Below are positions 1,924 through 22,390 of a DNA stretch of 64,000 bases, in pieces. The DNA comes from Stylophora pistillata (lineage: Eukaryota): assembly GCF_002571385.2 (NCBI RefSeq), contig NW_019218027.1, forward strand, positions 130,637 to 194,636, in the 5' to 3' direction. The notes below the pieces were generated by a model. The model was not told the origin of the DNA. It worked only from the letters and a program-made list of their open reading frames with translations, and did no database searches. Within the stretch, counting starts at the first letter, position 1, and each line of letters starts with the position of its first letter. The translations under genes were made by a program, and so were the position numbers.

Positions 1924-4900
1924 CTATTTACTTTTCCTGAGCATTACGCACCAGTTCCCTCGGTCGTAATAATGTTCCTCCAGTGTCACGTTACTGAGGC
2001 GGCTACAAAGGTTTCGGAGCTCGCCATCTTGAAACACGTGATAATACCTGTGGTACACGTGACCCTCTGTACCTTCTCCTGACCCTTCAGCGTCTTTTCT
2101 CCGTTTCTCATGTTGTTTTCCTGGGCCGCTGTATTTCCACGGCACAAATAAATCTTGTTGTTCAAACGAATCCCGGCTAGCATTAACCATCAATCTCGAT
2201 GAACAATTATGATCTAAAGTTTCGGATTTATTAGGGGATGGTTCGTTATTTGAGGGAAAGTTTTCGATGGTTTTGCTTTCTTTCAAAAACTCGTTTTTGT
2301 TACTTAGGTTTTCCTGTTCGGTGCGATGATTATTACTTTCGGTGAAATCCACTTCCTTCAGATGTTTCTTTTTAACTTTTTTCACTTCCTGTTCTAAAGC
2401 CCATACGTACACGAGTACCAATCCCCCTGGGCGTGTTATTCGAACCAGTTCCTTTAGACCAACCAGACGTCGCTCGGCCGTAGCAAGGTGATGAAGAACT
2501 GCGATGCAGAGACATACATCAAACACATCAGTCCTGAGGGACGAAAACACGAAAAATAGACAATTCAGTTTCACGACTTTTTAATCCCTTGGCCCGTTCC
2601 TTCGCTAACGACAACTTTAACTCTGTCAACGACAAAAGCAGCGAGAAACGCACACTAAGCGAACACGTTTTCTTCCATTTGAATATTTAATAGTACAAAA
2701 CCATGGTAACAAACTAGCCAATCGAAACAATGGAGAACATCAGGAGTGCTGAGAACTAAAGCGCGGGAAAACACAAGTGACTACGTCACGATCGGTTTTG
2801 GTTTTGCATTTGATCGGTGAGCACAAGTTTTTCGACAGCCAATCACAGGCCGCGGGGAGGCACAACCAATACAATCTCTGGTTACAAGCGGCAATATATT
2901 GAAAATTCCCTTATCCCCTGTCTCTCTGTCTGGCTGTCTCCATTCCACAAAAATCAATAACCATGCATTGGCCGCCCTCCTCACCTGTATGGCAATGACA
3001 AGATATCACACACAATCACAGAATATCCCCGCTCTCGGCAGATAGAAGCCAAGTTAAAACTTCTATCAGAACCTGTTTTGAATAGATTATCATTAATCCC
3101 AAGATATTTGCCGTTTCCACATCCTACATCCGCCACCAGACTCCCGACTGGTTGATTCCGCAGAAAGTCTGCCACTTTTGGCCAAGGGCTGTGCCGTGTT
3201 CCACTGAAATGTGGCGCAATCTTTTCGTACACTTCGTGCACGTGGAGCTTTTCCAGATTTTGCGCTTCTCCAATCGTTGTTGGAACACTGGACGGAGGCG
3301 AGAGTTCGGGAGCAGTCTTGCTTCCAGTTTGCGAATCACACTGAGCTGAGAAGGCGCAGTCACACGGAGTGTGGCGGACTTTGCGAAGTGTTAGCGAAAT
3401 CCTTGTTTGTCTTTCAAACAGAGTAGTTCCTTCTTCGGCTCTTTTATTATGAGTGCCCTCTGCAATGACTGTTTCAGGTTCCTTGGAGATTTTAACGTAA
3501 CCAGTCCCCTCGTTTGATGTACTTTTGGCATCATGTATAATATCGTATTTTCGAGGTGTTATACTGCAATTTGAAGACAAGAACATTTTGTTCCCACAAT
3601 ACGAGCATATAGTAAGAAGTGAAAGATATACGTGTCTGTTGGGATTCAAATTTATTTCTCTTAAATTGAATTGTTAGAATAGGGAAGGCAAAAATATTTA
3701 GGTGTTTTCCAAGTTCAGAAGAAATATATCCACGTTCCACTCTTATTTTCCCCCTTTGAAACAAAATTACGCTACGTCACTACAGTTGAGTCGTGTGCTA
3801 TCACCGCTGTGGCGGGTCAAGTTAGCTTCTTCTTAAAGTAAACCACAAAATATTAGTTTGATAGGACAAAAAAATATCGAAATGGAAAGAAAAAGCCAAA
3901 AAGGATAAAGCATATTTTAAGAATCAAGACGATTGACGCGTGTTGCACAAACCAAAGTGTACAATTTAGGCGAGATGTTTCGAGATACACCAGCCATAGC
4001 AAGCGCCTTTAACACTGAGTTCCTGGAGCCAGTCTAAAACAGTAGCTGTGTTCAACTGGATTTGTATTTCTTCCGGAAATGACTTTATCCTGGTGGAAAG
4101 CGGTCCATCTAAATCTTACCCGTGACTCCAAAGATATCTGCTTTCACCAGTCATGACCAATAAACTTCTCCTTGGTAAAACAACTGGCACGTGTCTACCA
4201 TCCGGATGACGAAACTCCATTGTGACCTGATGCAATCAAAAATACATAACATAAAATACACTGAGTTTTTAACCAAAGCACTTCTATGGGATGGCTCTTG
4301 TTTCAAAGTTGAATTAGGATTTTGAGTACAGAGAATTTTAGAATTTAAAATTTGGAATTAGAAAAAAAAGGATTTAGCCGCAGCACTCTCACAGGGTGGC
4401 TCTATGTCAAGTGACCTGAGGTCAAATAAGCTTGTTGAACATTGATTTTGTGGAGAGAGGGAAATTGGCAGACCCAGAAAAAAATCGTCACAGTGAGCAT
4501 AGGAAAAAAAGATCAACTCTATCCTCATGTGACATCATCATTGCCCAGGAGTTGAACCCAAGTCACAGAGATAGGAAAACGTGTTCTCACCACTGCATTA
4601 CCCTTACTCCACCGACAACCTCATTCTCAAGGGGGGTGGGGAGGGATGGGCTGGGGAGGGACGGGCTGGGGAGGGACAAGAGAGAGCCAGGATATAAGGG
4701 AGGTACCTTCAACTACAAACGTCACTCTTGGTGCTTTGGCAGAGGCGTTTCTTCACCCTCTGCAAGGAGTCTAGCACTGATAGTAGCACTCATTTTTAGT
4801 GCAGGAGCTCCAGCTACTCTCTCCACCAATGTGTATCATATACCTTTGTGATTAGAAGTAATGTGCAACCTGTAGTGCTCATAATGAGGGCCTACTTACA

Positions 4901-7293
4901 GGCTAGAAACTGTGTCATTGAAAACCTACTATAAGGAAAATACCTGAGATCCAAGGCTGAGTGAAACTATTCCATCTTCAAAAGCAGAGTGAGTGTCAAT
5001 GTGAGGTGGAATACCTTCCGCATAAAAATAAAAATAAAAATACATTTCTAAAAAAGTGATTTGAAATATATTTACTAATATATCCAGGGAGATAATGCAA
5101 TTTACTAATATATATTACTATGTTATGGAGAGCGCCCATATTTTTCTAGAGTGCGTTGCGTTACGTAATTATTAAAAATAGAACGAAGAAGTTTCTAGAA
5201 CATTTAGTCATGATGACTAAGCGAGAACTTTAAGGAGAACCTTCTAGAACCGTGACTCAGCATATTTTTGTTATGATGTAATCATAGTGTAATGTTTCTA
5301 AAAATAGCAATATTACAGATCTCTAGAACATTCTAGAACTTTCTGAAAGATATATAAGAAGTCACGCTAGCTTAAAGAGAGAGACCTTTTAGTGAGCTAT
5401 AACTGCTGTTGCGAAGAGCCCAGAGGAGCGAGAGCCGGACAGAGTTGTTTACTGGAATTGAAAGCCGTGTGGAAGGCTACGTGAGAGAAAGAATTACGGA
5501 CGTCGACAATTTGTTAAAGATTTTCAAGAGAACTGTGAGTTGTGCGGTAGTACACTGAGATTTAAGTGATATTATTTGTAAAGGGCTCTAAGTTATAAGG
5601 TTACTGATTGTATTAGTATTTATATCGCTCCGTAGCTAAGTGAAAAAGATAGTTATTGTACTGGTTGTCGATATCGCTTCGTAGTTATTACGTCAGTCAA
5701 TAAAGTAGTTGAGTTGTACGAGTTATATCTTTCTGGCGGTTTGGAAAATACCGTAACAACTAATATATATTACTAATATGTCCAGGGAGATAATGCAAGT
5801 AATATTTGTTTTACTGAAAGACTGAGCAAAGTTGGATGTGTTCAGCCAGTCTATCCTAACCAGAATTGCATCTAGTGTAATATACAAAGACAAGCTTAAA
5901 ATAAAAACTGCCATAGAGGCACATGTTTTTGTTTTGTTTTGCAGAGGCAAAGCCTCCAAGAGAGGTACTATGGCCTTGCCAATTGCAGGTTTCTACTACC
6001 ACCACCTTTTTCACCACATTCATGTTACCACAAAGGCTCTAAAATTCCCTGCTTTTTAAAATTTTTCCTAGGTAACAGGCTTTTTCTAAGGTAACAGTTG
6101 GTATGAATTGCCTGTTTCATTTCAACTTTGATTTTCACATGTTAAAGCTGGAAATTATTGATAACATCTCTACATTTCTACCTTTAGTCTGATTTGTTGA
6201 AGGAAACCTCATGAGCTTTTTATTTTCATCATCTGCTTAAAGGTAGTTTTCCCCTTTAAATAAAATTTAACTCTAAAGATTCAGTTCTACCTTGGCCTGG
6301 CTTGTATTCGTTAACTGTCATTTGATCTGGTTTGAACATGACTTTCTCCTGGACACGATCCAACAGTACGTCACAAACACCAGGAAAACCATCAGGTAAA
6401 GGATTTGATTTGTCTACATTATTTGATCGATACAAAAACTCGTAGCCAAAATGTTTGACTCTCCTATGACGAAGTTCCTGATTTGCTGTGAAAGAAGAAG
6501 AAAGCTTCTTATATGACTATAAAAAGGATATCTAATGAACCATTTTTTGTAGACACTTCTGAAAAAAGTTGTCAAAAGGGTCCACCTCTGAAAAAAGTTG
6601 TCAAAAGGATCTAAATATTGTTGGCTTCCTTGAAGAAAATAATCAACCCTCCCTATACAATTACCTGCCATCCTCGGGGGATGGGGTGGGGGAGAAGGGC
6701 GTGGAGAAATGGAACTTCTTGTTCCTAACGTTAATACTTGATCAAAACATAGTACCTGTGCCTTGAATCTCAACCTCATTCCCTTCACTTCCCCATCCCA
6801 GTACTTGAATTAACTGCTCCTCTTCTGCCTCCGTCACAAAATCATCCACTAACACAAGACCTGATGGTGTGGCCTGTTTTTCAAACGAAACATCATCGGG
6901 TAAATTTGTGAGGAATGAAAGGTAGAATCTGACGTCGGGTCTCGGAAACTCTGAAGGACAGTCTAAAACACGACCGTGCACTTTTTCCATTGCCTTAAGT
7001 GATTCACTGACATGCTCAAAGGTGATAAATGAAAAGGATCTACCAGGGAACATCAGAAGCCGCTCTATGTTTCCAAACTTCTGAAAAAAGTTGAAAATTA
7101 GCTTTCGGTCTATGCCACACATAAACCCTCCATTTCCGACCATCAGATGGCGAGTGGGCGATTCTGAAACTATGGCAAGTTCGGAATTATTCCTGCGAAG
7201 ACTATGAATTAGTCTCGTCTGCTTTCTCAGCGCCTTTTTTTCTGCTTTGGTCAATTTTGTTGCACACGTTTTCATTGCATTCGATGTCGCCAT
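1924..7293 (-). CDS. ALKBH8: Alkylated DNA repair protein alkB homolog 8 / tRNA mcm5U methyltransferase (RRM + AlkB 2OG-Fe(II) + Trm9-like MTase)
   Basis: Exons (minus) 7293-6756, 6485-6291, 5014-4944, 4226-4120, 3563-2985, 2533-1924 join in frame. Motifs: RRM (RSFSFITF), [68 protein letters not shown]...C zinc cluster, [24 protein letters not shown]. Confidence 0.96.
4436..4605 (-). mobile_element. Degenerate tRNA-derived SINE in an ALKBH8 intron
   Basis: The minus strand reads GTAATGCAGTGGTGAGAACACG...GGGTTCAACTCC (A/B-box-like), followed by a body. Confidence 0.5.
5121..5758 (+). mobile_element. Solo LTR (Gypsy-like) in ALKBH8 intron 2
   Basis: TG...CA ends with terminal inverted 8-mers (TGTTATGG / CCGTAACA); 4-bp TSD ACTA at 5117-5120 and 5759-5762; internal TATATAA near 5351 and AATAAA at 5699-5704; 638 bp. 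Confidence 0.88.
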
Positions 7294-7439
7294 CTTGGAT
7301 TTTAAATTTAGCGAAAAAACCTCAGACCTAAGTACTCGCTGGCTCTGTGATCTCAGCTGGCGGGACACATAACCCACTTGGCGATACCCTGGAAAATTAC
7401 TCGGATATTTTGAGGTTCAGTGGAGGACAAGTGACATTT
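7294..7439. promoter_or_regulatory. Compact bidirectional promoter shared by ALKBH8 (-) and URAH (+)
   Basis: The two divergent ATGs (7293 and 7440) are separated by only 146 bp. Confidence 0.7.
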
Positions 7440-10400
7440 ATGCAGTGTAACGCAAGATTATCCAGCATACGGAAACACATAAGCCCAGAAAAGGTTAGTT
7501 GATCTGCGCACTACATAATGTTCCCATATGACTTAGAAAATTGCAACTAACGCTGTATGCTAGAAGTCACTAATGCACTATTGATCAGTTAGAGTAAGTT
7601 TTAGATGAGCAACATAAAACAAAATGCCAGAAGACGCTTCAAAAACCAATACCTAACATGTTGTTTGTGAAAATGAAACAAGAGAAACGATTTTATGGGA
7701 AAAATATCAGCTGTTGGGGGAGATCTTTTGTAACAGCGTATACCGTGCGCCTGTAAGGGAGCCCCCCACTCTCCCCTCCCTCTCTTACATTGATACCTAT
7801 ATACTCAGTGGAAAGTGCAAAGAAGAATTGATCGTGATAATTTATTTAAAGTGTTGAGCTGTTATATCTTTTCATATGTAGCCTTTTGTTTCATCAGTAA
7901 TCTGAAAGGTGACCTACCCCTTCTTTCCCATCTCACAAACTGCCTCTTAAACCATATTCCTATCCTCTGAGGGATCAGAAAAACACTCAAGGTATGTCTA
8001 GGGAAATGTTGGTGTCCTTCCAATCTTCACATTATATGATATTTTCAGTCCTACTGTAGTACCATTATGAAGAGTGAAAAAGTCACCAAAAGTTCTCTGC
8101 ATCTTGCTTCATCTACACAGTATATAATCTTGTCTCCTGTTCAAAGTTAAGGTTGGGAGAGGGAGAGAAAACGTTTTATGGCTGTTAGTTAGAACCCAAC
8201 TGTCTTGAACATAAGCTTCTTTAATGGGAAATTTGCATCATCCTTTCTGGACCTATACATTTCTTTTAGATAGTCCTGCCAATCTCTGTCTTGAACACCA
8301 GCTTACATAACGGAAAATTTTCATTATCCTTTCTGGACACATACAACATCTGTTCTATATTTAGGCAAATCTATTTGTTAACCCTTTACACCAAAACATC
8401 AGTTTCCAAGTTCTCTATTCTTGCTTTCTGAACATTTCCTATGATATAATCGTACTTACAAGGAGAATATGCTTCATGATCAAGAACATCTTGACCTTGC
8501 AAATAAATACATTAACTTAATCAAAACTTAATCCTTTAACTCCCACCAATGACAAGTGTCTAATTTCTCCCAATAGTGTTCCCCCTGAATCTTAAATAAA
8601 CTAAGTTAATCCTATTCCATAACTCAGTGATACAATGCCATTGGTGGTACTTAACTCTGCTGTTACTTTACAAGAGAATAAAGGCTGATAGTTTCGAAAG
8701 AAACTGTTTGGGGCTGCATAGGCGGGAGTAACGAAATAATTTGGATATATCAACAAAGTTGAAATGGTAAATTGGCCACCGTAACGATTACAAAAGCTGA
8801 CGTTTCAAACATTAGCCCTTCGTCGGAGCGAAGGTTGCAAAAGTGTTGACTTGGGAGGGAAGCACTTCCTCTTGGTAGTGGTTTTACTCTTTAATGTTAA
8901 CCCTGACTTAAAATACTGTCTCTGAGTAGGTCTCCCTCTGGAGCCCAATTAATGTTCAGAGACACCAACCTCTGGAGATCTCAAATCTAGAGATTTGTTT
9001 TTATGGACCACCAGCACCCCCCCAACTGAATTTGCCTATGCAACCCCCCCCCCAAAACAAAAGTTCAGACTGTGAACCTTCAAGTGTCAGTGAGCATATC
9101 GAGCAATTTCATGGGAAAAATGTGGATCTATCTGTCAGGGATTTCAATTGGTCAAATACTCATCCAGTCAGACTCTCACTTAGATAGGTGTAACAAAGAA
9201 GAAACTCTCTTTTTTGTTTGCAATTAATGATGTGCATTGCGCAAGAAAATGAAGTCAGAAGCCGTAACACAAGCATAAGAAGCCAAATGATTTTGGAATT
9301 TTGGAACATGTGGAGCTTAAATCATGTTTTTTGTGGGCAACTGATCCAAACTTTCTTTTATCTGGGAGTTTTGGTCAACCATATGGGAGAGCGGGAAATT
9401 AGCTCTGTATCCAGGAGACTCCCAGATAGTCCAGGAGAGTTGGAAGATATGCTATTGTTTTGGCATCAATTGAGGTAACTTAAGGAATCCTTTGTCCATT
9501 TTCCTTAAGCCAGATCTCAAGAATGGTATGCCTTTCTGAGGGGTAACAAACCTAGATATGCTCTTTTCATAACCACAACAAGATCATCATTGAGATGAAT
9601 GTAGAATTTGAATAAGACATCATCCAGTTTCTCTGTTTGCAGTTGCAGAAAAAGGTCAAAGCAGTTCTCTAAAAGACTTGCATCAAAGCAAGAAAAAAGT
9701 TTTTAATCAGTAGAGAAATCTAATTGCCCCGAATGAGTATTTTTTTTATGCAATAGATGGTTTAAGGTCAGAAGTTACAGTTAGTTGTGTAGTCTGATCA
9801 AGGACTGAGAAGGAATTTAATGAGAAGCAGTGACTGATGCTTTGCTGATAACCTGAATGGAGGTTATTATCAGAGTCACGTGATGTCATTTCTGGTGTTA
9901 AGTGCATTTGGTGAAGTTGCTTGACTTAGACAATGTCTTCACCCCAGGTTTTCAAAATGTCAGTCACTGTTACAGACTCTCTTCACCCACACGATCAGAC
10001 TACATGACCAACCATTCAAATTATCTGACCCTGCCGAGGAGGGCCTGGGTTTTAAATTGAATACTCTTCTTGTGAATGAAACCAAAAGGAATCTGAAGCA
10101 TTTTTATTGATCTACTGTTTGGGTTTAAGTATGAAAGTGTTCAGTGCAGTCTTACACCCTTTGCATGTGGAAAAAAAATAAGTTAAATTTTTTATGGCTC
10201 ATTCTTTGCAGAGAAAGTTGAGTATGAGCTGTGTCAAATAAGCTAAACTGACTGTTTAAAGTTTAATAAATCACCACGAAATGAGTTGAGGAAACTTTAG
10301 GCATTTGCAGCTAAAAGAAAGCTGCATAGTTAGTCAATATAAAATTGGGTTGTGTCAAGCAAAACAAGGCGGAGAGAGGTATGCAGGGCTCTGGCACTAG

Positions 10401-13400
10401 TGCTAGACCCCTGCACGCGACTTTGGCAATTCCCTCCCACGCTATTGTGACTTTAACTTCAGCTTTTCCTTTAGCTTACATAAAATGCTGAAGATGCTAT
10501 CGCTTTCTGCTTAAAGTATTGAAGGGGAAAAAAACGGATCTAAAACTTTAAGCCGGCGCAGGAATCTTACAAATGTGGCAAACTTGTAGTTTCCATGCCA
10601 ACACATTATGCCGCAGCAAAAACACGACGGGAATTGACAGCTGAAGGGAGTTATCTTCGTATAGAACCAAATTCCTTTCATAATCTATAAGGAATGAACA
10701 GAAGTTAGAGAGAAGACCTTCTTATCGTCAGATCAGGAGTTGTTCACGACCTGGCACTTAACAAAAGAAATATCTCTCGCAACCATCAAGAATAGTCCAT
10801 TAGAACTGGTGTTATAGAAGCAGATATGAGTAGTGCTTCCGAGTGGAACCTGAAATTCTGATAAATTTAGCCCGTAGAAGCGTGGTTGGAAATTTTTCTG
10901 CGACAGTAGCTTGCAATAGTTTGAATTTCCGAACGGAACGGAATGCTCAACAGTTCGCTTTAAAATGCTCAAAGGCCGAGACGGATCACAGCCGTTTTTT
11001 CTTAAGTATCTATTATTGTATAAATTATTTAAACCGTTAAGGCGCATTTTCCTCTCGCATCACTCGCGCCATTTGTGTCCTTGCATTATAAAAATATGCG
11101 TGAAATTTTCCTGTTTATTGCGAGTAGTGAGGTCACACTGTTAAAAAAAAACTTGCTTTCACACGTCAATCTACGAAATAGGAAAGAACTATATATAGCG
11201 GAACGAAAACTTAAGGCGATTTGGTAAGCATCTGAGTTTTTTCAGCATTTTTCTATATTGCGCTCTGGCTGGTAAAATGCGGCGATTTTATCTTGTTTTA
11301 TGTCGATAGATTCAATTTAGAGGGACGTAACTACTTGCGGTTGGGATAACATAGATTACTGCCAGAATGTCTCTGTTTAAATAAAGCAGACTCGAAGATA
11401 ATTGAGTTAACTCAAGGAATTGCATAACACTGCAGTTGTAGAAAAATGTCATTAGAACATGATATTAGAATTGACACGACAGAAACTTTTTAAGAAGCTC
11501 ACTTTTTTTAGGCTTGTCTTTCAAACTGAAGAGTTGTTCCCAACGTACTGTTGCAGTTCCAGGTAACTATGCGTGAAATGTGGTCAATTCCAAATTAAGT
11601 TTGACCGTGAAGCACACGAAAATGAAATCTGCCACATCAATCTAATTTAATAAAATGTTATTTATAGCATTTGCAAAACACCTAAGACCAAAATAATTGG
11701 TTAGAAAAAAAAAAGAGAAGTAACACACCTACACTTTTTTCACTTTTTCTCCTGTCTGAGCTAAAGAAGAAAAATCTTTTGTGTCCTTTGTAGATAGTCG
11801 TCGTGTACGACTTCAAACAGATGTTAAATCTGGTCAAACTTTAGGATGACGGTATTTCAAAAGGTTTACACGTAATCTTACATGATACCGAAAAAAGTAT
11901 TTTAACAAACTAATACTGATAATTTCCACTCGATTGAGTTCACAATGTCTAGATCTTCAGTCTCTGCGGAAATATTGTCGAACTCTGTTTTTAGCCGGGG
12001 GTAAAAATATATGAGCGATATAGTAAGTGCTTGAAGAATTTACTCTTTGCATTTTGCAATGATATTTGAAAACGTTGTTCCCGTATTGGCTTTTATCGGA
12101 TTTAGTTTGTAATAAGTAGGCGCCTACATTATGGCATCGTTTTAAAACGTTTTTCGAGGGCGTGCACAAACCACTCGGAGCAATCAGTAAATGCTTCGAA
12201 ACAACTGCCCTTACATTAATCTACACTGTTATAGTGCTTTGCAAATTTAAAAAGTGTAGACCTGATTCTACTGGTACGGTTGAATCGAAAGAGGAATCGT
12301 CATTGATGCGGCTACGCTTTAAGCTTTTTTCGCATAGCAGTATTTTTGTTATAAATAGCAGCATTTTTCTAAAGGCAATATCTTGACTCGTGTACTCGGA
12401 AAGTAATATTTCTCTGAAACACATCGTCGCTGTATTAGCCCATGATTGGATTTGGACAATAGCATTATTTGACTTCCCCTTGTCCGAACGTTAAAAAGCC
12501 GTATTTGTCGAATAGTGTCATGTCGTATCAAGCGGAAACTAAACTTGAAACATATTAAGGACTAACAGCTTTCGTGGTTTGACGTGAAATCAACTGTTAC
12601 GTATGCCTGACTTCTATAAGGAGCCTATTGAAAATTACATTTTATTTAATTTTAGTTTTTTGTTCAAGCTTCTCGTTTAATATATTGTCCAAATTGTGAA
12701 AACTGACGTTGATTTTCTTGTAGAGCCAATATCTTTTCTTATGAAAAGTTCAACCATATTGTTAATTGTTATACATGTCAACATAGTGTATTCGTAGTCG
12801 CTTGTCTATTTTTCGATTAATTACAAGAAGATATGATACGACAATTCTCTGTGTGGTAATATAACTTGGAGTCACAATAGATACGACGAAAAGAAATCAA
12901 TATTGACTAAATGTTATCTTTTGGAAAATTACCTCGCAATTGTCTCTGAAAACGTTAGTTATGATGGTCTGGATGTGAGCGAAAGCTGTGAAGATAGCCG
13001 GAAAACGTTTGTTAGATCCGTGTTTTCGTTTAAGCTGACACCGAGTTTTATTCGAGGTTATCTAGTAATGATATCAAAGTCAACCATACTGGAGATATTC
13101 TCCGGAAAGGGACCTAATATCGTTGACTTCCCACTCGACCTTAAAAAAAGAGCAGGTATTTGATGTAAGCTTTTCGGCACCACAGAAATAAGTCTCTTGA
13201 AATGAAGAATGAAGATTAAGTTATATTGGACCAGTTGTTACCAAACCTTTACTGTAAACCACGCCAAAGAATCTGAAAATCCTTTTATCGTTATGAAGGT
13301 GGACAGCCCTTCAGGTTTGTTTAAGTCATCTGCATCTTTTTCTCTGGTGGATAACTATGTTATAGCGGTAAATAGGGGTTTGTGCGATATAAATAATCTT

Positions 13401-16400
13401 CCCAAGGGTCTACGATTGCTGGTGAGTGTGTGACATCACTATATATTGCCCGGCATCAAATCATCTTGAAGTCTTGCTAGCGCGAATACGCGACAACCTC
13501 AATCTCCGCGCGATAATGGACGAAGAAACAAGCTCAGTTGTTCTCCTTCCCGAAGTGAAAGTAGAACCTATGGAAAACCCGGAAAATAATGGTGACAGTG
13601 AAGAAAGTTCGGTTGGAAGTCCAACGGACGAAAATTCGCTCCCCCGTTTTGGTGAAAGTTCAGAAGAAGACATTCAAAGGTTGTTGGAGCATCGCTCTTG
13701 TAGTGAAAATACATGGAGGTCCACAAAAAATGCCGTGAAAATTCTCCGCGACTACATGGAAGAAAAAAGTATGGATGTTAACTTCGAGAACTTGGATAAG
13801 GCAGCGTTGAATGATCTTTTGCGTAAATTTTACGTCGAAGCCCGCAAAAAGAACGGCGACTACTACAAGTCTTCTGCTCTGGGAAGCATACGCTTTGGTA
13901 TCCTGCGGTACTTACAGTCACAACAGAGCAATATAGACATCAAAAATGACCCTGAATTTACCGAATCAAACAAAATTTTTAAAGCTCAGGTGGAGAAGCT
14001 CAAAAAGCAAGGCAAAGGCGAGGTAAATCGTTCCGACATTGGCCCAGATGACCTAAAGAAGCTTTACCTGAGTGATGTCTTGTCGCCATTCAGCGCCGAT
14101 GGCTTGCAACGGAAAGTGTTCTTTGACCTGCTCATGTATTTGCCTGGAAAACGGAATCGTAGTAACGTGAGAGAACAAACCCGGGACACGTTTCTCGTGG
14201 GCTATGATTCATCTACTGGCTTGAAGTATATTTATCCTAACCCAGCACATTGTGAAAATGTTTTTACCGATGGAAAATGTCCTCGAATGAATGAGAAACC
14301 AGGTAACCTTTTATTTTTTTTTTTTTAGAAAACAAGCGAGAGTATTCAAAACCTTATAAATATTTTCGTAAATCGAGGCAAATTTTGTTTTTGGGGCTTG
14401 AAAACGATTTCTTACAAGAACTTTTCGAAAGCAAAGAACGCGTCAACAAATAGTATACAAAGTCGTTAAAAAGCGAAATTTCGCAAGTAAAATCTCTTAT
14501 AATAAGAGTGTTTGGTTGCAGTTGGAACAAGGTCTCTTAAACATATCTATATTGAAATTTTACTTTCACGTTAATTGATGCATGCCTCTCCAATTGAAGT
14601 TTGTGAAAGCTTTCTTATTTTACTGGGTTATGTCCTACAAAGTGGTTCAAAGTTAACCACCAAAATGAAATAACTGGCTTGGCAAAGTTTTATGACTTCA
14701 AACGTTTTTCACTGTTTGGTGGAAGGGAAGGAAGCTATTTATGTCAGTAGCATGAGGAAAGTTTTGTTCTGACAAAAAGATGGTCTAATATTTTGAAAGG
14801 ATTTTGAGTCTAGTTCAAAACACTTCAACCTGAAATTCACTAAACACATAGTAACAATATAAATTACAAAACAAGCTTAAAGAAGGCACATTTGCTTAAG
14901 AGTTTAGGTGAATCAGATGTCTGCTGAGGCCTCACTGAAAAAATCCTTGTTATTTTGAAAAGGGTCAGAGAAGGATCATGGCATTTTTCCTTTCACCCTT
15001 CCCCCCCCCAAAAAAAAAAAATCTCTTAAAACTTGTCCAATAATGGTATGCTGTGATGTGAGAGAGAGCATGATTTGTGCCTGGTAATTGAAACTATTTA
15101 ATTGTAAGCTATTGTCCATAAGGCGAGTTGAGCATTATGAAACATGAGCTTATGAGACCTAAAATATATGTGGTGTCTCTGATATTATGCAATACTTTAA
15201 AGATGCTTGGTTGGAGAATACTACTTGTATGTTGATATATTGGTTTTGAAATAAAGGAAAGGATTGTAAGATGAGAAATATTGCTTTCACCCCACCCTCC
15301 TTCAGGAAACCCAAGATGTCCGGTGGCGTCATTTCTGAAGTACCTGTCGAAGCTGAACCCAATGAACTTGTACCTATGGCAGAGACCAAAGGCATCCTTC
15401 AAACATCACGCTTGTGAAGATGACCCCATTTGGTATGAAAATGCTGCAGTTGGGCACAACTCCTTAGGGGAAATGATGACAAATATGTCCAAGCTTGCAC
15501 GGTTGTCCAGAATTTACACAAACAACTGTATCAGAGGTACTTATGTGGCAATTCTCGACAGCTTGGTCGAAGACTACCCTCTCATCACTACTTTAGTATC
15601 CATACCCAGCTCCCAAAGATTCCAACATATTCTCCCCAGAGATCCTTGTGATGAACGTCCAACCATGGTGCCTGTTACTGGAAAGTATATCTCAAGTTCA
15701 GAAGGGAAAACATCCCCAAGAACCAATGAAGGAGCCCCACCATCTAGTGCAGAGTCCAATAGAGAACAGGCTCAACTCACAAAGATAATGGTTCCAGGGA
15801 ATTTCTCTCATCTCCAACACCACCCTGGCAAGACAAGAAATTCTCCTCCTCAAGAAAGTAATGGAATTGATCATCGTGAGAAGCAAAGGGATGGAGGCCC
15901 AACAAGTCCAACAGAATCTGTTCTTGGCCTTCCATACCATTCCAGTCATAGAAATCTCCACAGTCCCTTTGTTGCGTACAGATTTTCTCAGCTTCATGCA
16001 GCTTCCCAAAATAACCTAGCACGCAATCTGCACCAACCATCACCTAAGACTTCTCTAAGTTTATCTCAGGGGTCAGTAACTCGGGCAGGAAGTAACCATG
16101 CAGGGCTTGCAAATTCAAGAGTTGTTTATTGTCAAACATTGCCAGCAATGGCCTCATCATCAACGTTGTCACTCACTGCGGTAAGTGGCCACAAAAGACA
16201 CATTTCCTCTGTCAGTAATACAAATTATAAACTGTTCTCTTACTCCAGTGTGCAAAAGTTTACCAAATGGGTTATATCCTAAGCCATGACACTACAAAGG
16301 GTGGTCTCTGGGTTGTATTGTGAACTTTAAAACATATCTTTTTATGTTCACAACATTAGTAATTTACAGTAAGTTATGTATGATGCACAATGTTTCCCAA

Positions 16401-17928
16401 AATATGATAATAACAAACATGCAAATGCAATTAAAATCATATTGCAATTTAAAGTAAATATTAACAATCAAAAGGTACTTTTTAAACATGCTGGTAAGAA
16501 CAAATTAGTTAGCTGCCTACAATTGTTTTTTTTTTTTATGTGGCCCTGACTTAGTTACACACACTTTTCACTTGAACTCCTTACTAAGTGACATGTAGAT
16601 GACTGGTTGTTTCTGTGACTGACAGCATCGCTCAAGTGATAATAGTCCAATGACAGGAAGTCCTCTAACCACTCATGTGCTGGACACAGCCAGAGGTTCA
16701 CCAGCTAAGAACTTGCCAATTCAGTTGTACTTTGAAGAAATGCGTCCAGACAGTAGAATGTGGAAACATATTACCTCAGGGTAAGACAGACTTAATTCAG
16801 TTGTTCAATTTTGAAACTAATAGTGGATTGATTTGGATTTGCTTTACCAGTCTTTACTCTTTTACTGGTTAGAAAAGGTGCATTTCCCTCACTGCCATCA
16901 AATGCAAAACTCAAAAGTCCAGTCACAGCTTGGTAACTTCAGTTTTTGCACACTTCAAGCAATTTGCTTGTCTTTACTCTGAGTTTTCAATTGTTCTTTT
17001 TTATATTTTCATTAGCCCTTGTTAGCCATTGTTATCACTGTTAACTTGGTTTTACAACAATCAATAAAAAAGGTAGACTCTGAAACATCAATCAAATATT
17101 CAATACATCGAGATCTAGCAGTACATATACTGATAGTTATTGAAAAAATTTATTCGCATTTGGTGTTTATTTTTGAACTTACATTTTGTGAGTAAACCAA
17201 CTTGGAATGTTTTTGCTTTATTTTGACCTTTTCCTTCAGGGTAACTAATGCTGATGGTAGAGTACCCAACTTACTAACTCAAGAACAGTTTATACCTGGT
17301 AAATACATGATCAGATTTGAGACAGAGGCATACTTCAAGGACATTGGGGTTTCTTCATTTTTCTATCCATATGTAGAGGTAATGAAAGCGTAAAATACTG
17401 TTATTTAAAATATTCACATCAACACTGATTCTAGGCATTGTCCACATTATGCTGCACTTCTTCCCTATATCTAGAGGTACAATAATCACAAATTTGCTGT
17501 GCTGCAAATATATTGGTACTCATTAGTTGTGTCTACATTCTTCCATCAAACATTGCAAATTGCTTCCCCAAGTTCATGCAGAAAAATCCCTGTAGATATC
17601 AAGAATTTCCAGTGTCTTGTAAGTCAACAACTTCCTTCAGCTTCATAATCATTATGGTAGTTGAACTTAGGGGAGTGCAATTCAGTCTGCGATCAAGTGT
17701 ATGTTTTAAACATGAAACAAGCATACAATACTAGGTTGATTTAATATTGCAGGCACAGATGACCTCAGCAAATGAATTATCTGCTCTCTATTGACAGATC
17801 ACAATATTTTGCTCAACTTGTCCATTGTTCTTTTTCAGATCGTGTTTCTCGTCAATGACTCATCTCAGCACTATCATGTTCCTCTTCTTCTCAGTCCGTT
17901 CTCTTACTCAACCTATCGTGGAAGCTGA
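7440..17928 (+). CDS. URAH: 5-hydroxyisourate hydrolase (transthyretin-like), PTS2-bearing isoform, ~145 aa
   Basis: Exons: 7440-7493 ([18 protein letters not shown]; PTS2 RLx5HI; donor GTTAGT, phase 0), 16626-16780 ([13 protein letters not shown]), 17240-17378 (TNADGR...FYPYVE), 17839-17928 ([19 protein letters not shown]). The C-terminal YRGS is the HIUase signature. Catalytic exons are secure; the exon-1 link is inferred. Confidence 0.9.
8677..8832 (-). mobile_element. Penelope-like element pseudo-LTR fragment with a mutated hammerhead (CCGACGA)
   Basis: Reverse complement of the 61037-61192 segment. Confidence 0.8.
9786..10004. mobile_element. Decayed palindromic repeat, related to the copy at ~43524-43690, with degenerate hammerhead-like cores
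   Basis: Ends TGTAGTCTGAT...ATCAGACTACA; internal CAGGTT...GTCAGTCACT segments are shared with 43593-43637. Confidence 0.55.
13516..16282 (+). CDS. Crypton-derived DUF3504 (tyrosine-recombinase-like) protein, KCTD1b/ZMYM/QRICH1-like, nested in URAH intron 1; ~587 aa stand-alone or ~681 aa if spliced to URAH
   Basis: Exons 13516-14302 and 15306-16180 (or to stop 16282) join in phase 1. Motifs: [109 protein letters not shown]. Confidence 0.88.
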
Positions 17929-19526: not shown

Positions 19527-22390
19527 TTATGAAAGATCATCTTTAGAGAAAAAATTTACTACAGCCTCATAAGTTAAAAACATTAACGCAGTGTTTGGAA
19601 CTTGTCGGAGAAGGTGTGTTCCCAGTCCACCATAAAGTCCTGTTCTTCCTTCCTCAAGCAGAATTTTTCTAAAAGCCTGGAAGAATGAGTGATATCTTCT
19701 TTTTCCATCTACTTCTTTTTGTCGTAGTCGTGTTCTGATTACTTCATGAGGATATGCCATAACAGAGGCAATACACTTTGACGTTGCAGCAGCCATCATA
19801 AATTGCAAAAAGTCCACTACATTTTTCTCATGAGTCCCTCTCAATTTGAAACGATGCCTCTGTACTTCTGCTTTGATATGTTCATAGATCACAAAGTGAA
19901 TAACAGTTTCTGTAACACCAATGTAGGTTGCAGTCAGCCCTCGATAGAAACCCTTTATCCCATCAGTTTTCCATATATTCTGGATAAGTTTCAATACTTG
20001 CCCCTTGGAAGCCCTGAAATGGAAACAAACAAATAAAAATGAAGCCCAGCTCTGTATTTTATTTGTAATGTTTCAAGGAAAGATGTAAATTTTCGAAAAC
20101 ACTGCTTGCAACATAAATGCTCCTTATTCTCCTTTACAATAAGTGGGGCTGTTTAAATATGTAAAGATTCAGTTTTTTACCTATTATCCAATTGCAGTCT
20201 TGTCTTGATGACCCAGAGAGGACTTGTCAATGATGAAGTCACAATCCCTGAATTAAATTAAAAGGATTAATACAGGTACAAACAACTTTGTTTGCAAAAA
20301 AAGTAACTGCAACTGTTGATAGCATCAAGTGCTACACAATGGACAATGCATTTATCCACTATTAAAAGCTAAACATTCCTGTTGATAAAGTTTTTCTATG
20401 CCATTAGAAAAATAAGACTCACACCTCACGAGATGATACTTTATGAAAATTTTAGTTAAAACACACCTGCTGAGCAAGCTGATCCTATATGTACAACTTT
20501 GCTTTCTGGTGACACAAAGCCGCTTCTGTTGAGAACATGTTTAGCTTTAGCATACACTGTGAAGTACAGTGCTCTCGAAGGGGCAACTCCAACTAATGTA
20601 GGCCCGAGGCCCTTGAATAGGGCTGCCACACCTTCCGTCTGGGTGATATGTTTTAAACAGGACAGAACACCAACAGGTCTTGAGTAACTGATCTCCACAG
20701 GAATACTCCACACCCCACCTGGACCAGTAGCTGATGGGTACAGAACATGTCTAAAGGCTGGAACTGAGGACTTAAAGAGTAAGACTAGTTTTAATGGTGA
20801 GACTAATAACAGGAAGGTATTTGTCGCACTGTTTATCATCTAAAATTTCTGTTATGTTTTATGGCTCCTCTTCAGGGCCTCTTTTTAACAGGCCAGCAAT
20901 CAAGACTGCCCACTTGATTTGCATATTTTGTCGGGGAACTCTTCATCTTGGTTAGGAAGCCAACATTAAGGCCAACTACCTTTCACTAACACAAGAAATT
21001 ACAGCTTGGTCACCCCAATGAAAATATACTGGGCTTTGAATTTAAGTTCCAGTAACCAGCCTATGGTGTTCAAACGTACATTTCACGTTTTGGTGCTTGG
21101 TGGCCCACCTATCCCAGTTGCCAAGTGGAAATTCTGATAGGAAAAAAAGGCCGGGTAACAATCTGAAAAACCAAACCAGCCCAGTTGACAAGACTCTTGA
21201 TAAGCTACAACTCAAGTCATTCTTTGGAAGCAGACAACCATTGAACGGACACCTACATAATCCAGATCAGCCCCCACAAAAACGTGACTGCCATCCGAGT
21301 GTACTTTGCAACCATGACACTAACGCAATCCCACAAAGTACACTATCTCGCCAGTAATTTTACTTTGAGAGGGTCTGCATGAAAATAAACTCAGCAACTT
21401 TGATTGCTAAAGAGTTTAAATCACATCCTGACAAATTATTACTCCAAGTGGTACTGTGGGCTTAATTTTGTCCCATCCGCAATCGCGCGCTTTCGCAAAG
21501 ATAACATGGAAAGCAAGTCTTCAAAGTTATACACAAATTGCGACATAAATATTGCAGATAGGAAAGCATGACTCTAAGATGAAAAAAAAAAAAGCTTTAA
21601 AATATATCTAAAGGCTTATATATAGGAGTTCTTGACGATTTTGGATAACCGTACCTGCAATCTCGTCTTTACAACTTCCAGAGGACAAGTCAATGTAGCA
21701 CCAACGGTTCCTCCAATACTGAAGAGTGAAATGCAAAATTTGCTGAGCTTGCTAACTTACTTCTTACACTTTCAACGTTAATTCTTGCACTTTCACATTC
21801 TAGATTACTACTAACATCCACTTTTGAGAACGCACACTTATGCAACGGCGTCGCAAGTTAACAATTGTTTCACACATGATCGATGAAGTGACGAAGGCAT
21901 TTAAAGGAGAAGCTTTACTCTAGGTGAATCTCTGCTAATATCGAAACTAGACCATAAACGGATGCGTTTAGAAAGCGAAAATGTATCAGACGAGCTCCTA
22001 TAAGATTGATTGTGTAATCATAAGCATACGATTGACAATGTCCCATCTTCTCGTTAGGAATCTTGAACCCTTACTTCACAGTACTATATTTCTCAACAGA
22101 ACATAGCTACCTTTCATGGAAAGATAGAAAATAGCACACAAAGTACACCTGGAGAGGCACGATTTTATCCACAGAAAATGGTGGACTCGTTCAAGCAAAA
22201 CAACGGCCGACAGGATGTTATGGCATGTGTATTTGAAACGTTCAAACGAAGGGAAACAGATCTTGTTTCGAACATACCCTCCAGCCACTAAATGGACGTA
22301 CGGGGACCTTCCTTTACTCATGTCTGGATGGATCTCGCAGTGCAAAAGATTTACTTTGGTGTCACCCAGAGTATTTTGGTAACTGGTCAT
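19527..22390 (-). CDS. SLC25A36: Mitochondrial pyrimidine nucleotide carrier SLC25A33/36-like, 5-exon copy
   Basis: Exons (minus) 22390 (or 22321)-22278, 21718-21655, 20770-20467, 20247-20181, 20013-19527 are in frame. Motifs HLVAGG, TCPLEVVKTRLQ, GVAPSRA, PLWVIKTRLQ, YPHEVIRTRLR, RQVPNTA. The SLC25A33 versus 36 assignment is not resolvable. Confidence 0.92.

Follow-up and report, generated by a model that had tools for sequence, protein, structure and literature searches.

In the stony coral Stylophora pistillata (assembly GCF_002571385.2), a 64,000-nucleotide (nt) stretch of contig NW_019218027.1, positions 130,637 to 194,636 of the forward strand (hereafter the window, with coordinates counted from its first letter), contains URAH, the gene for the urate-pathway enzyme 5-hydroxyisourate (HIU) hydrolase (HIUase), which we found to be expressed with two different beginnings. 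One of these is a 54-nt first exon that encodes a peptide resembling a type 2 peroxisomal targeting signal (PTS2) and is spliced across 9.1 kb onto the catalytic exons; this exon is real and conserved. The other is a two-exon module derived from a Crypton transposon, with a DUF3504 domain, which lies inside the first intron and is spliced onto the same acceptor, at 16626. Both junctions, their similar abundance and the conservation of the whole arrangement in corals and sea anemones are observed directly, and we estimate at about 80% the probability that the locus is one ancient unit with two alternative 5' modules sharing this acceptor. The two modules compete for the acceptor, and the predicted products are a 145-amino acid enzyme with the PTS2-like head and a fusion protein of ~680 amino acids.

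Two 5' modules spliced to one acceptor

The first exon opens with an ATG at 7440 and runs for 18 codons to 7493, where it ends in phase 0 in front of GTTAGT at 7494. The acceptor AG at 16624-16625 is preceded by a pyrimidine-rich run and by an in-frame TGA (16620-16622), and exon 2 continues in phase 0 from 16626. Throughout the region 7295-16625 this is the single candidate that combines an ATG, a PTS2-like motif and a phase-0 GT, compared with an average of 0.095 for the shuffled region. RNA from the same organism, namely, two raw read runs (X22 and X23) and two sets of poly-A contigs (X4 and X5), was mapped to positions 11000-16999, and the junction 7493^16626 is spanned by five reads of X22, seven reads of X23 and one contig each of X4 and X5, all in full agreement. 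The letters overhanging before 16624 give a 30-letter consensus identical to positions 7462-7491 and unique in the window; since exon 1 and the intron both close with AG, these reads already fit from 16624. In nearly all reads of X22 and X23 the first mate lies on the minus strand so that, assuming the usual stranded library, the RNA comes from the plus strand. The overhang after 16781 matches the start of 17240 (13 and 21 reads in the two raw runs), which joins exon 2 to exon 3, and the predicted product of the complete short transcript is the protein of 145 amino acids. An earlier note, made from the letters of this DNA, had postulated the hidden 54-nt exon, its phase-0 end and its match to the acceptor at 16626, and had proposed reads across 7493^16626 as a check; the sequence and the junction reads now establish the exon. 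Gene callers miss it, and several database entries accordingly begin at an internal Met.

The same acceptor receives the second exon of the Crypton-derived module (exon B). The open reading frame of exon B that starts at 15281 comprises exactly 300 codons to 16180 and hence is in frame with URAH exon 2, and the joint 16179/80>16625/26 (GT..AG, 445 nt skipped) is present in 13 reads of X22 and nine of X23 and in contigs with depths of 83 and 87, so that splicing places the module and exon 2 in one continuous frame. It contributes ~554 amino acids, and the fusion contains the full HIUase domain and lacks the N-terminal PTS2. The contig depth is ~90-105 for the PTS2 form, ~83-87 for the fusion and ~20 for the unspliced form (contig 16151-16653). 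Most module transcripts splice from 16180 to URAH exon 2, and about a fifth are unspliced in the poly-A contigs. The PTS2 and fusion junctions were counted in ratios of 5:13 and 7:9 in the two raw runs, with no difference between the runs (Fisher p = 0.48), which provides no evidence for a regulated switch.

The earlier note had viewed the DUF3504 unit as a nested gene, with URAH as its same-strand host. The intron indeed spans 9,132 nt and holds the whole DUF3504 coding unit, in the same orientation, but the unit is fused in frame to URAH exon 2, and we did not retain the notion of a nested gene with its own product: most transcripts splice into the host exon and the tail of the unspliced form is not conserved. 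In favour of an independent unit, with joints to exon 2 that represent read-through or splicing noise, is the existence of the unspliced form of depth about 20, which would end at the stop codon 16280-16282; this explanation appears extremely improbable given that the fusion junction is about four times as deep as the unspliced form and similar in depth to the PTS2 form. Comparison between species argues in the same direction. The exon ends with ...VVYCQTxPxMASSS... followed by a phase-0 GTAAG, and this arrangement recurs at five genomic loci and in some 18 clusters of proteins; the donor is kept in every species examined whereas the read-through tails beyond it are unrelated. Moreover, fusions with the same junction are annotated at NCBI in five anthozoan genera that include both corals and sea anemones: Acropora muricata (683 amino acids), Montipora foliosa (685), Actinia tenebrosa (586), Nematostella vectensis (591) and Actinostola (619). 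The Nematostella genome displays the same exon layout, and Montipora-type sequences represent both isoforms (L010 and P0082).

The protein searches that led to these sequences differed in reach. With exon 2 as the query, only 11 matches were obtained, mainly unspliced gene calls, and the search served only to reach the loci; with exon B alone, only read-through calls were returned, because the length window left out proteins of ~680 amino acids, and the fusions were found with a longer query (P0078). The window's own annotated protein was absent from the matches of every protein search. Public annotations of the fusion are either 'uncharacterized' or misnamed. The name of the Actinia fusion (P0088), 'uric acid degradation bifunctional protein TTL-like', and that of a Desmophyllum HIUase fragment (P0003), 'BTB/POZ domain-containing protein kctd1', are misleading and apparently were transferred from partial similarity; in the former case, the plant TTL protein fuses HIUase to OHCU decarboxylase.

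A third N-terminus, at the internal Met at 16650, also had been envisaged. Two N-termini on the catalytic exons stand at the RNA level, and the reads give no sign of the third. A cytosolic enzyme made from Met 16650, on a transcript initiated somewhere in 16283-16625, would fit with the position of this Met at the opening of the conserved catalytic core, where gene callers often start, and with the low read depth over 16200-16599. That depth is explained, however, by the retained 445-nt intron, the mapped RNA contains no cluster of molecule starts near 16283-16650, and every intact locus has an open phase-0 frame through the linker in front of the Met; thus, we consider such a product very unlikely. 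The sole odd overhang in this region belongs to an X5 contig that joins 16563 to 42 foreign letters. We rejected it as a third 5' exon, since its 30-letter consensus occurs neither in the window nor anywhere else in the genome; the contig, part of a metatranscriptome, is probably chimeric or of foreign origin.

The first-exon peptide and its proposed role in peroxisomal targeting

The exon-1 peptide was identified in five further coral sources, two of them genomic (L002 and L006, where the exon is in syntenic position and followed by a GT donor) and three of them spliced transcripts (L004, L005 and L010). In the transcripts P0013/L004 and P0012/L005, the same exon is joined to the same second exon, which starts with HRTAD and HCSAE, respectively; in L010, the peptide MSNARLSTIHNHITTRK is followed across the junction by RSSSD, and the gene caller passed over an in-frame ATG, beginning instead at the internal Met 75 nt further on. 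The six coral sequences share the core R-L-x-x-I-x-x-H-I, in which R1, L2, I5, H8 and I9 are invariant. Compared with the most distant transcript, the exon shows nine synonymous and three nonsynonymous codon differences (nonsynonymous divergence, dN, ~0.12; synonymous divergence, dS, 0.5 to saturated). The exon 2 acceptor and the leading H are conserved, and in the alignment with Desmophyllum the similarity ends at the exon-1 donor.

Mini-exons that are not annotated were found next to the ALKBH8 start, head-to-head with this gene, in two sea anemones, both in genomic sequence. The one from Actinia tenebrosa (L013, 6788-6853) reads MQSGISGSGKRLAKISSHLEKK followed by GT, contains the canonical RLAKISSHL and lies 87 nt from the ALKBH8 start; the one from Nematostella vectensis (L012, 3555-3599) reads MIRRTEKFSQHLASK followed by GT and contains RTEKFSQHL, with T at position 2, ~105 nt from the ALKBH8 start. 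A scan of Nematostella with the strict PTS2 motif gave no match, and a relaxed scan then found the mini-exon. Both have a final K followed by a phase-0 GT and are homologous to coral exon 1. Conservation of the peptide in orthologous loci, on which the earlier note had staked its case, is thus seen in the corals, with a homologous mini-exon in the two anemones.

The identity of the enzyme is clear. Exon 2 matches the Pfam family PF00576 with 26.9 bits (cut-off 25.3), a full-length orthologue reaches 130 bits, and own-genome matches fall on exons 3 and 4; both hallmarks of HIU hydrolases, H-x-L-D towards the N-terminus and Y-R-G-S at the C-terminus, are present. In the 397.6-Mb assembly of this coral, URAH is a single-copy gene and uricase is present, as are at least four copies of OHCU decarboxylase on one contig (C12, 766996-767454 and 1411669-1437155), three or four of them within 26 kb; the two intronless copies that were examined both end in SKL, a type 1 peroxisomal targeting signal (PTS1).

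The strict PTS2 consensus is [RK]-[LVI]-x5-[HQ]-[LAF], located in roughly the N-terminal 40 residues (PMC7710942), and the signal has been reported for plant and most metazoan HIUases (PMC4324301, PMC8919083). In the coral nonapeptide RLSSIRKHI, at residues 6-14, positions 1, 2 and 8 fit this consensus, and position 5 is hydrophobic, namely, I in the corals and Actinia and F in Nematostella. The fit to RLx5H[LI] claimed previously holds, then, in that the peptide is PTS2-like and conserved, but the final I falls outside the strict [LAF]; a fish HIUase (P0015) carries RLQQLKNHI, which likewise ends in HI. PEX7 would carry the 145-amino acid enzyme of the short isoform into peroxisomes, and the fusion would stay outside; we infer the import because metazoan HIUases are reported with PTS2, uricase is encoded in the genome and two copies of OHCU decarboxylase, the next enzyme of the pathway, end in SKL. 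Like the metazoan peroxisomal HIUases, the coral protein combines an HIUase/transthyretin domain with a YRGS end and R-L-x5-H-[L/I] within the first 15 residues; unlike these, it has its signal on a 54-nt exon 9.1 kb away, shares the acceptor with a second 5' module and has I at position 9. Taken alone, the PTS2 exon amounts to ordinary annotation: an HIUase PTS2 on a short first exon is already known from other animals, and the coral is a new member of this set.

Several points weigh against the reading of the locus given above. The RNA mapping spans 11000-16999 only, so that it would miss any acceptor before 11000 to which exon 1 might be joined, and few reads were counted, about 2% of each raw run having been sampled. 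Position 9 is I, outside the strict consensus, in all six coral sequences; the PTS2 of zebrafish Uraha failed to bring EGFP into the peroxisomes of COS-7 cells (PMC8919083); and the literature yielded nothing usable on cnidarian PEX7. Finally, in Desmophyllum pertusum (L001, GCA_029204205.1), URAH exons 1-3 (2970-3022, 9976-10131 and 11432-11570) contain five frame-breaking indels relative to all other corals.

The points that concern the nonapeptide, together with the T at position 2 in Nematostella, would be compatible with a peptide that is conserved but does not work as a PTS2, in which case the short isoform would be cytosolic or sent elsewhere, and the peptide would be kept for another reason. 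We regard this as unlikely. R1, L2, I5 and H8 are invariant in the corals despite saturated synonymous change, the homologous place in Actinia holds a fully canonical RLx5HL, the downstream enzyme ends in SKL, and other non-canonical endings, HV and HM, have been proposed to be functional in HIUases of other lineages. As for Desmophyllum, the affected sequence has a 1-nt gap in exon 1 and more indels in exons 2 and 3, the annotated P0003 is out of frame, and stops also interrupt phase 0 ahead of the exon-B donor (about 8900-9256). Pseudogenisation was our first reading of these disruptions and was set aside: because both genes are affected, an assembly error is at least as likely as decay in this deep-sea coral, and the locus was not used as evidence against exon 1.

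Origin and retention of the Crypton-derived module

In Pfam, exon A scores 28.7 bits for QRICH1, just below the 30.8 cut-off, and exon B 21.5-23 bits for DUF3504, below 29.7; the Nematostella orthologue reaches 35.8 bits for DUF3504, above the cut-off. The amino acid identity of exon A is 99.6% to L002 and 70% to L001. PF12012 and PF00589 (phage integrase) are found in relatives with 35-42% identity. Over 66% of the query, the coral module shares 40% identity with a medaka protein that has a BTB domain, which fits the case of KCTD1 isoform b discussed below. Judging from a single automatic alignment, the H-x-x-R box that reads YTNHCIR in the PF00589 relatives is YTNNCIR in the corals, with K for R in the anemones, and the GH[RK]...Y block fails to align, the position of the Tyr being uncertain; the module probably is not an active recombinase.

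ALKBH8 and the HIUase exons flank the module in the window, L002, L001, L006, Nematostella and Actinia; in L007 it lies beside the HIUase exons, and the ALKBH8 side is beyond the start of the locus. The synteny across cnidarians proposed earlier as a check therefore holds, with the order ALKBH8, module, HIUase shared by corals and sea anemones. An intact single syntenic copy in such distant species is unlike a mobile element, and the nearest paralogue in the coral's own genome is only 42% identical. By our own estimate, the module has probably been retained in Hexacorallia for several hundred million years. A genome-wide search with the QRICH1-like part gave at least 130 matches of 23-46% identity, many with stops, which constitute a large Crypton-like family.

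Joining of a Crypton-derived domain to a host protein is not without parallel. Of the isoforms a and b of vertebrate KCTD1, the long one (b), with DUF3504 ahead of the host domain, arose through insertion of a Crypton upstream of this BTB gene (Kojima and Jurka 2011, PMC3212892). In both cases, DUF3504 lies upstream of the host exons, the long isoform has an N-terminal DUF3504 that the short one lacks, the host part oligomerises and the catalytic residues of the recombinase are partly lost. In contrast to KCTD1, the coral host is an enzyme, the HIUase tetramer, instead of a BTB domain, and the module belongs to Hexacorallia, outside the bilaterian range reported for known domestications; furthermore, because the module sits inside intron 1, the coral long isoform also loses the targeting signal. 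The choice of the 5' module thus swaps a domain and, presumably, the cellular address, given that the transposon-derived module shares its acceptor with the targeting exon. A second comparison is with the plant allantoin synthase/TTL, in which HIUase transcripts with and without PTS2 likewise direct the product to different compartments (PMC4324301, PMC13691922), but the plant protein joins HIUase to OHCU decarboxylase, has an internal PTS2 and contains no transposon-derived module.

The paired Crypton-derived/PTS2 arrangement is annotated without comment in other species, and a literature search found no paper that links DUF3504 or Crypton with HIUase. What we describe is a domestication of the KCTD1 type, now in non-bilaterians and on an enzyme: a second, independent instance, beside KCTD1, in which a domain of Crypton origin is attached to a host domain that oligomerises, in an arrangement that is stable from sea anemones to reef corals. 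Conceivably, although we give this rather less than an even chance, the dead Crypton module retained in Hexacorallia borrows the HIUase tetramer as a C-terminal oligomerising domain, so that the same catalytic exons would serve both an enzyme of the peroxisome and a protein outside it that may bind DNA, and mixed tetramers could link the two. Such tetramers and a nuclear location of the fusion, both envisaged in the earlier note, are speculative. If true, this would be a domestication outside Bilateria, beyond the four counted by Kojima and Jurka, and would parallel the use of the BTB domain by KCTD1 isoform b. Nematostella, which shares the arrangement and has genetic tools, would be suited to testing it.

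Promoters, layout of the locus and neighbouring genes

The two modules likely have separate promoters. In the mapped RNA (11000-16999), the exon-1 overhang is seen only at 16624 and at no place in 11000-16180, the raw-read depth rises near 12-13 kb, and Desmophyllum shares ~1.1 kb of conserved sequence in front of the exon-A ATG, as expected for a 5' untranslated region (UTR) or a promoter. A single promoter beside ALKBH8 could instead drive all transcripts, the head being chosen by alternative splicing. The poly-A contig with exon A reaches upstream to ~10.1 kb and has 4,202 letters in both runs, an equality that looks more like a graph branch than a transcript end and to that extent leaves room for such a promoter; the contig ends in a region that is unique in the genome and has no clear acceptor. 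The overhang confined to 16624, the rise in depth and the conserved 1.1 kb all speak for separate starts, as does the fact that the NCBI fusion models begin at the exon-A Met, and a common promoter accordingly seems to us improbable. In X23 only, an island of plus-strand RNA (12145-12800; depth 5-12) has sharp piles at its beginning and end, with 12800-13400 empty; either a few molecules were copied many times here, or the DUF3504 module may have a 5' exon specific to this run.

The features of the locus are collected in Table 1, where the coordinates of the catalytic exons incorporate small corrections. On the left, URAH exon 1 stands head-to-head with an ALKBH8-like gene; the distance of 146 bp stated in that note is correct (ATG 7440 against the minus-strand start at 7293-7291). 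The orthologous transcripts have 5' UTRs of ~50 nt and ~32 nt. A downstream exon of the ALKBH8-like gene (1924-2574) matches Pfam Methyltransf_11, and the annotation of its syntenic counterparts in Nematostella and Actinia lists RRM_1, 2OG-FeII_Oxy_2 and Methyltransf_11, the combination found in ALKBH8.

Table 1. Features of the ALKBH8-URAH region in window coordinates
Feature	Position	Strand or length	Remarks
ALKBH8-like first coding exon	6742..7293	-	Start codon 7293-7291; Pfam RRM_1 on open reading frame 6742-7377; head-to-head with URAH exon 1
Spacer between divergent ATGs	7294..7439	146 nt	Presumed bidirectional promoter and 5' UTRs, from sequence
URAH exon 1	7440..7493	+	18 codons; PTS2-like nonapeptide RLSSIRKHI; GT donor 7494
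Intron 1 of PTS2 isoform	7494..16625	+	9,132 nt, with whole DUF3504 module inside; junction reads; orthologous transcripts map to four exons
Exon A, Crypton-derived module	13516..14299	+	Starts MDEETSS; QRICH1-like domain; joint 14299>15303 in poly-A contigs
Exon A-exon B intron	14300..15302	+	GT..AG; 1003-nt skip in X4 and X5 contigs
Exon B, Crypton-derived module	15303..16180	+	End of DUF3504 domain and low-complexity tail ...SSSTLSLTA; phase-0 donor GTAAGT at 16181
Fusion-isoform intron	16181..16625	+	445 nt; when retained, module open reading frame stops at 16280-16282
URAH exon 2	16626..16780	+	Shared phase-0 acceptor; linker HRSSDNSP, then catalytic core; Pfam Transthyretin/HIUase
URAH exon 3	17240..17378	+	Overhang reads; own-genome Pfam match; L004 and L005 transcripts map here
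URAH exon 4	17839..17928	+	Ends YSTYRGS, stop TGA 17926-17928; own-genome Pfam match; L004 and L005 transcripts map here

Downstream of URAH, a mitochondrial-carrier gene occupies 19527-20839 on the minus strand; it is syntenic in L001, L002, L003, L006 and L007 and in neither of the two sea anemones.

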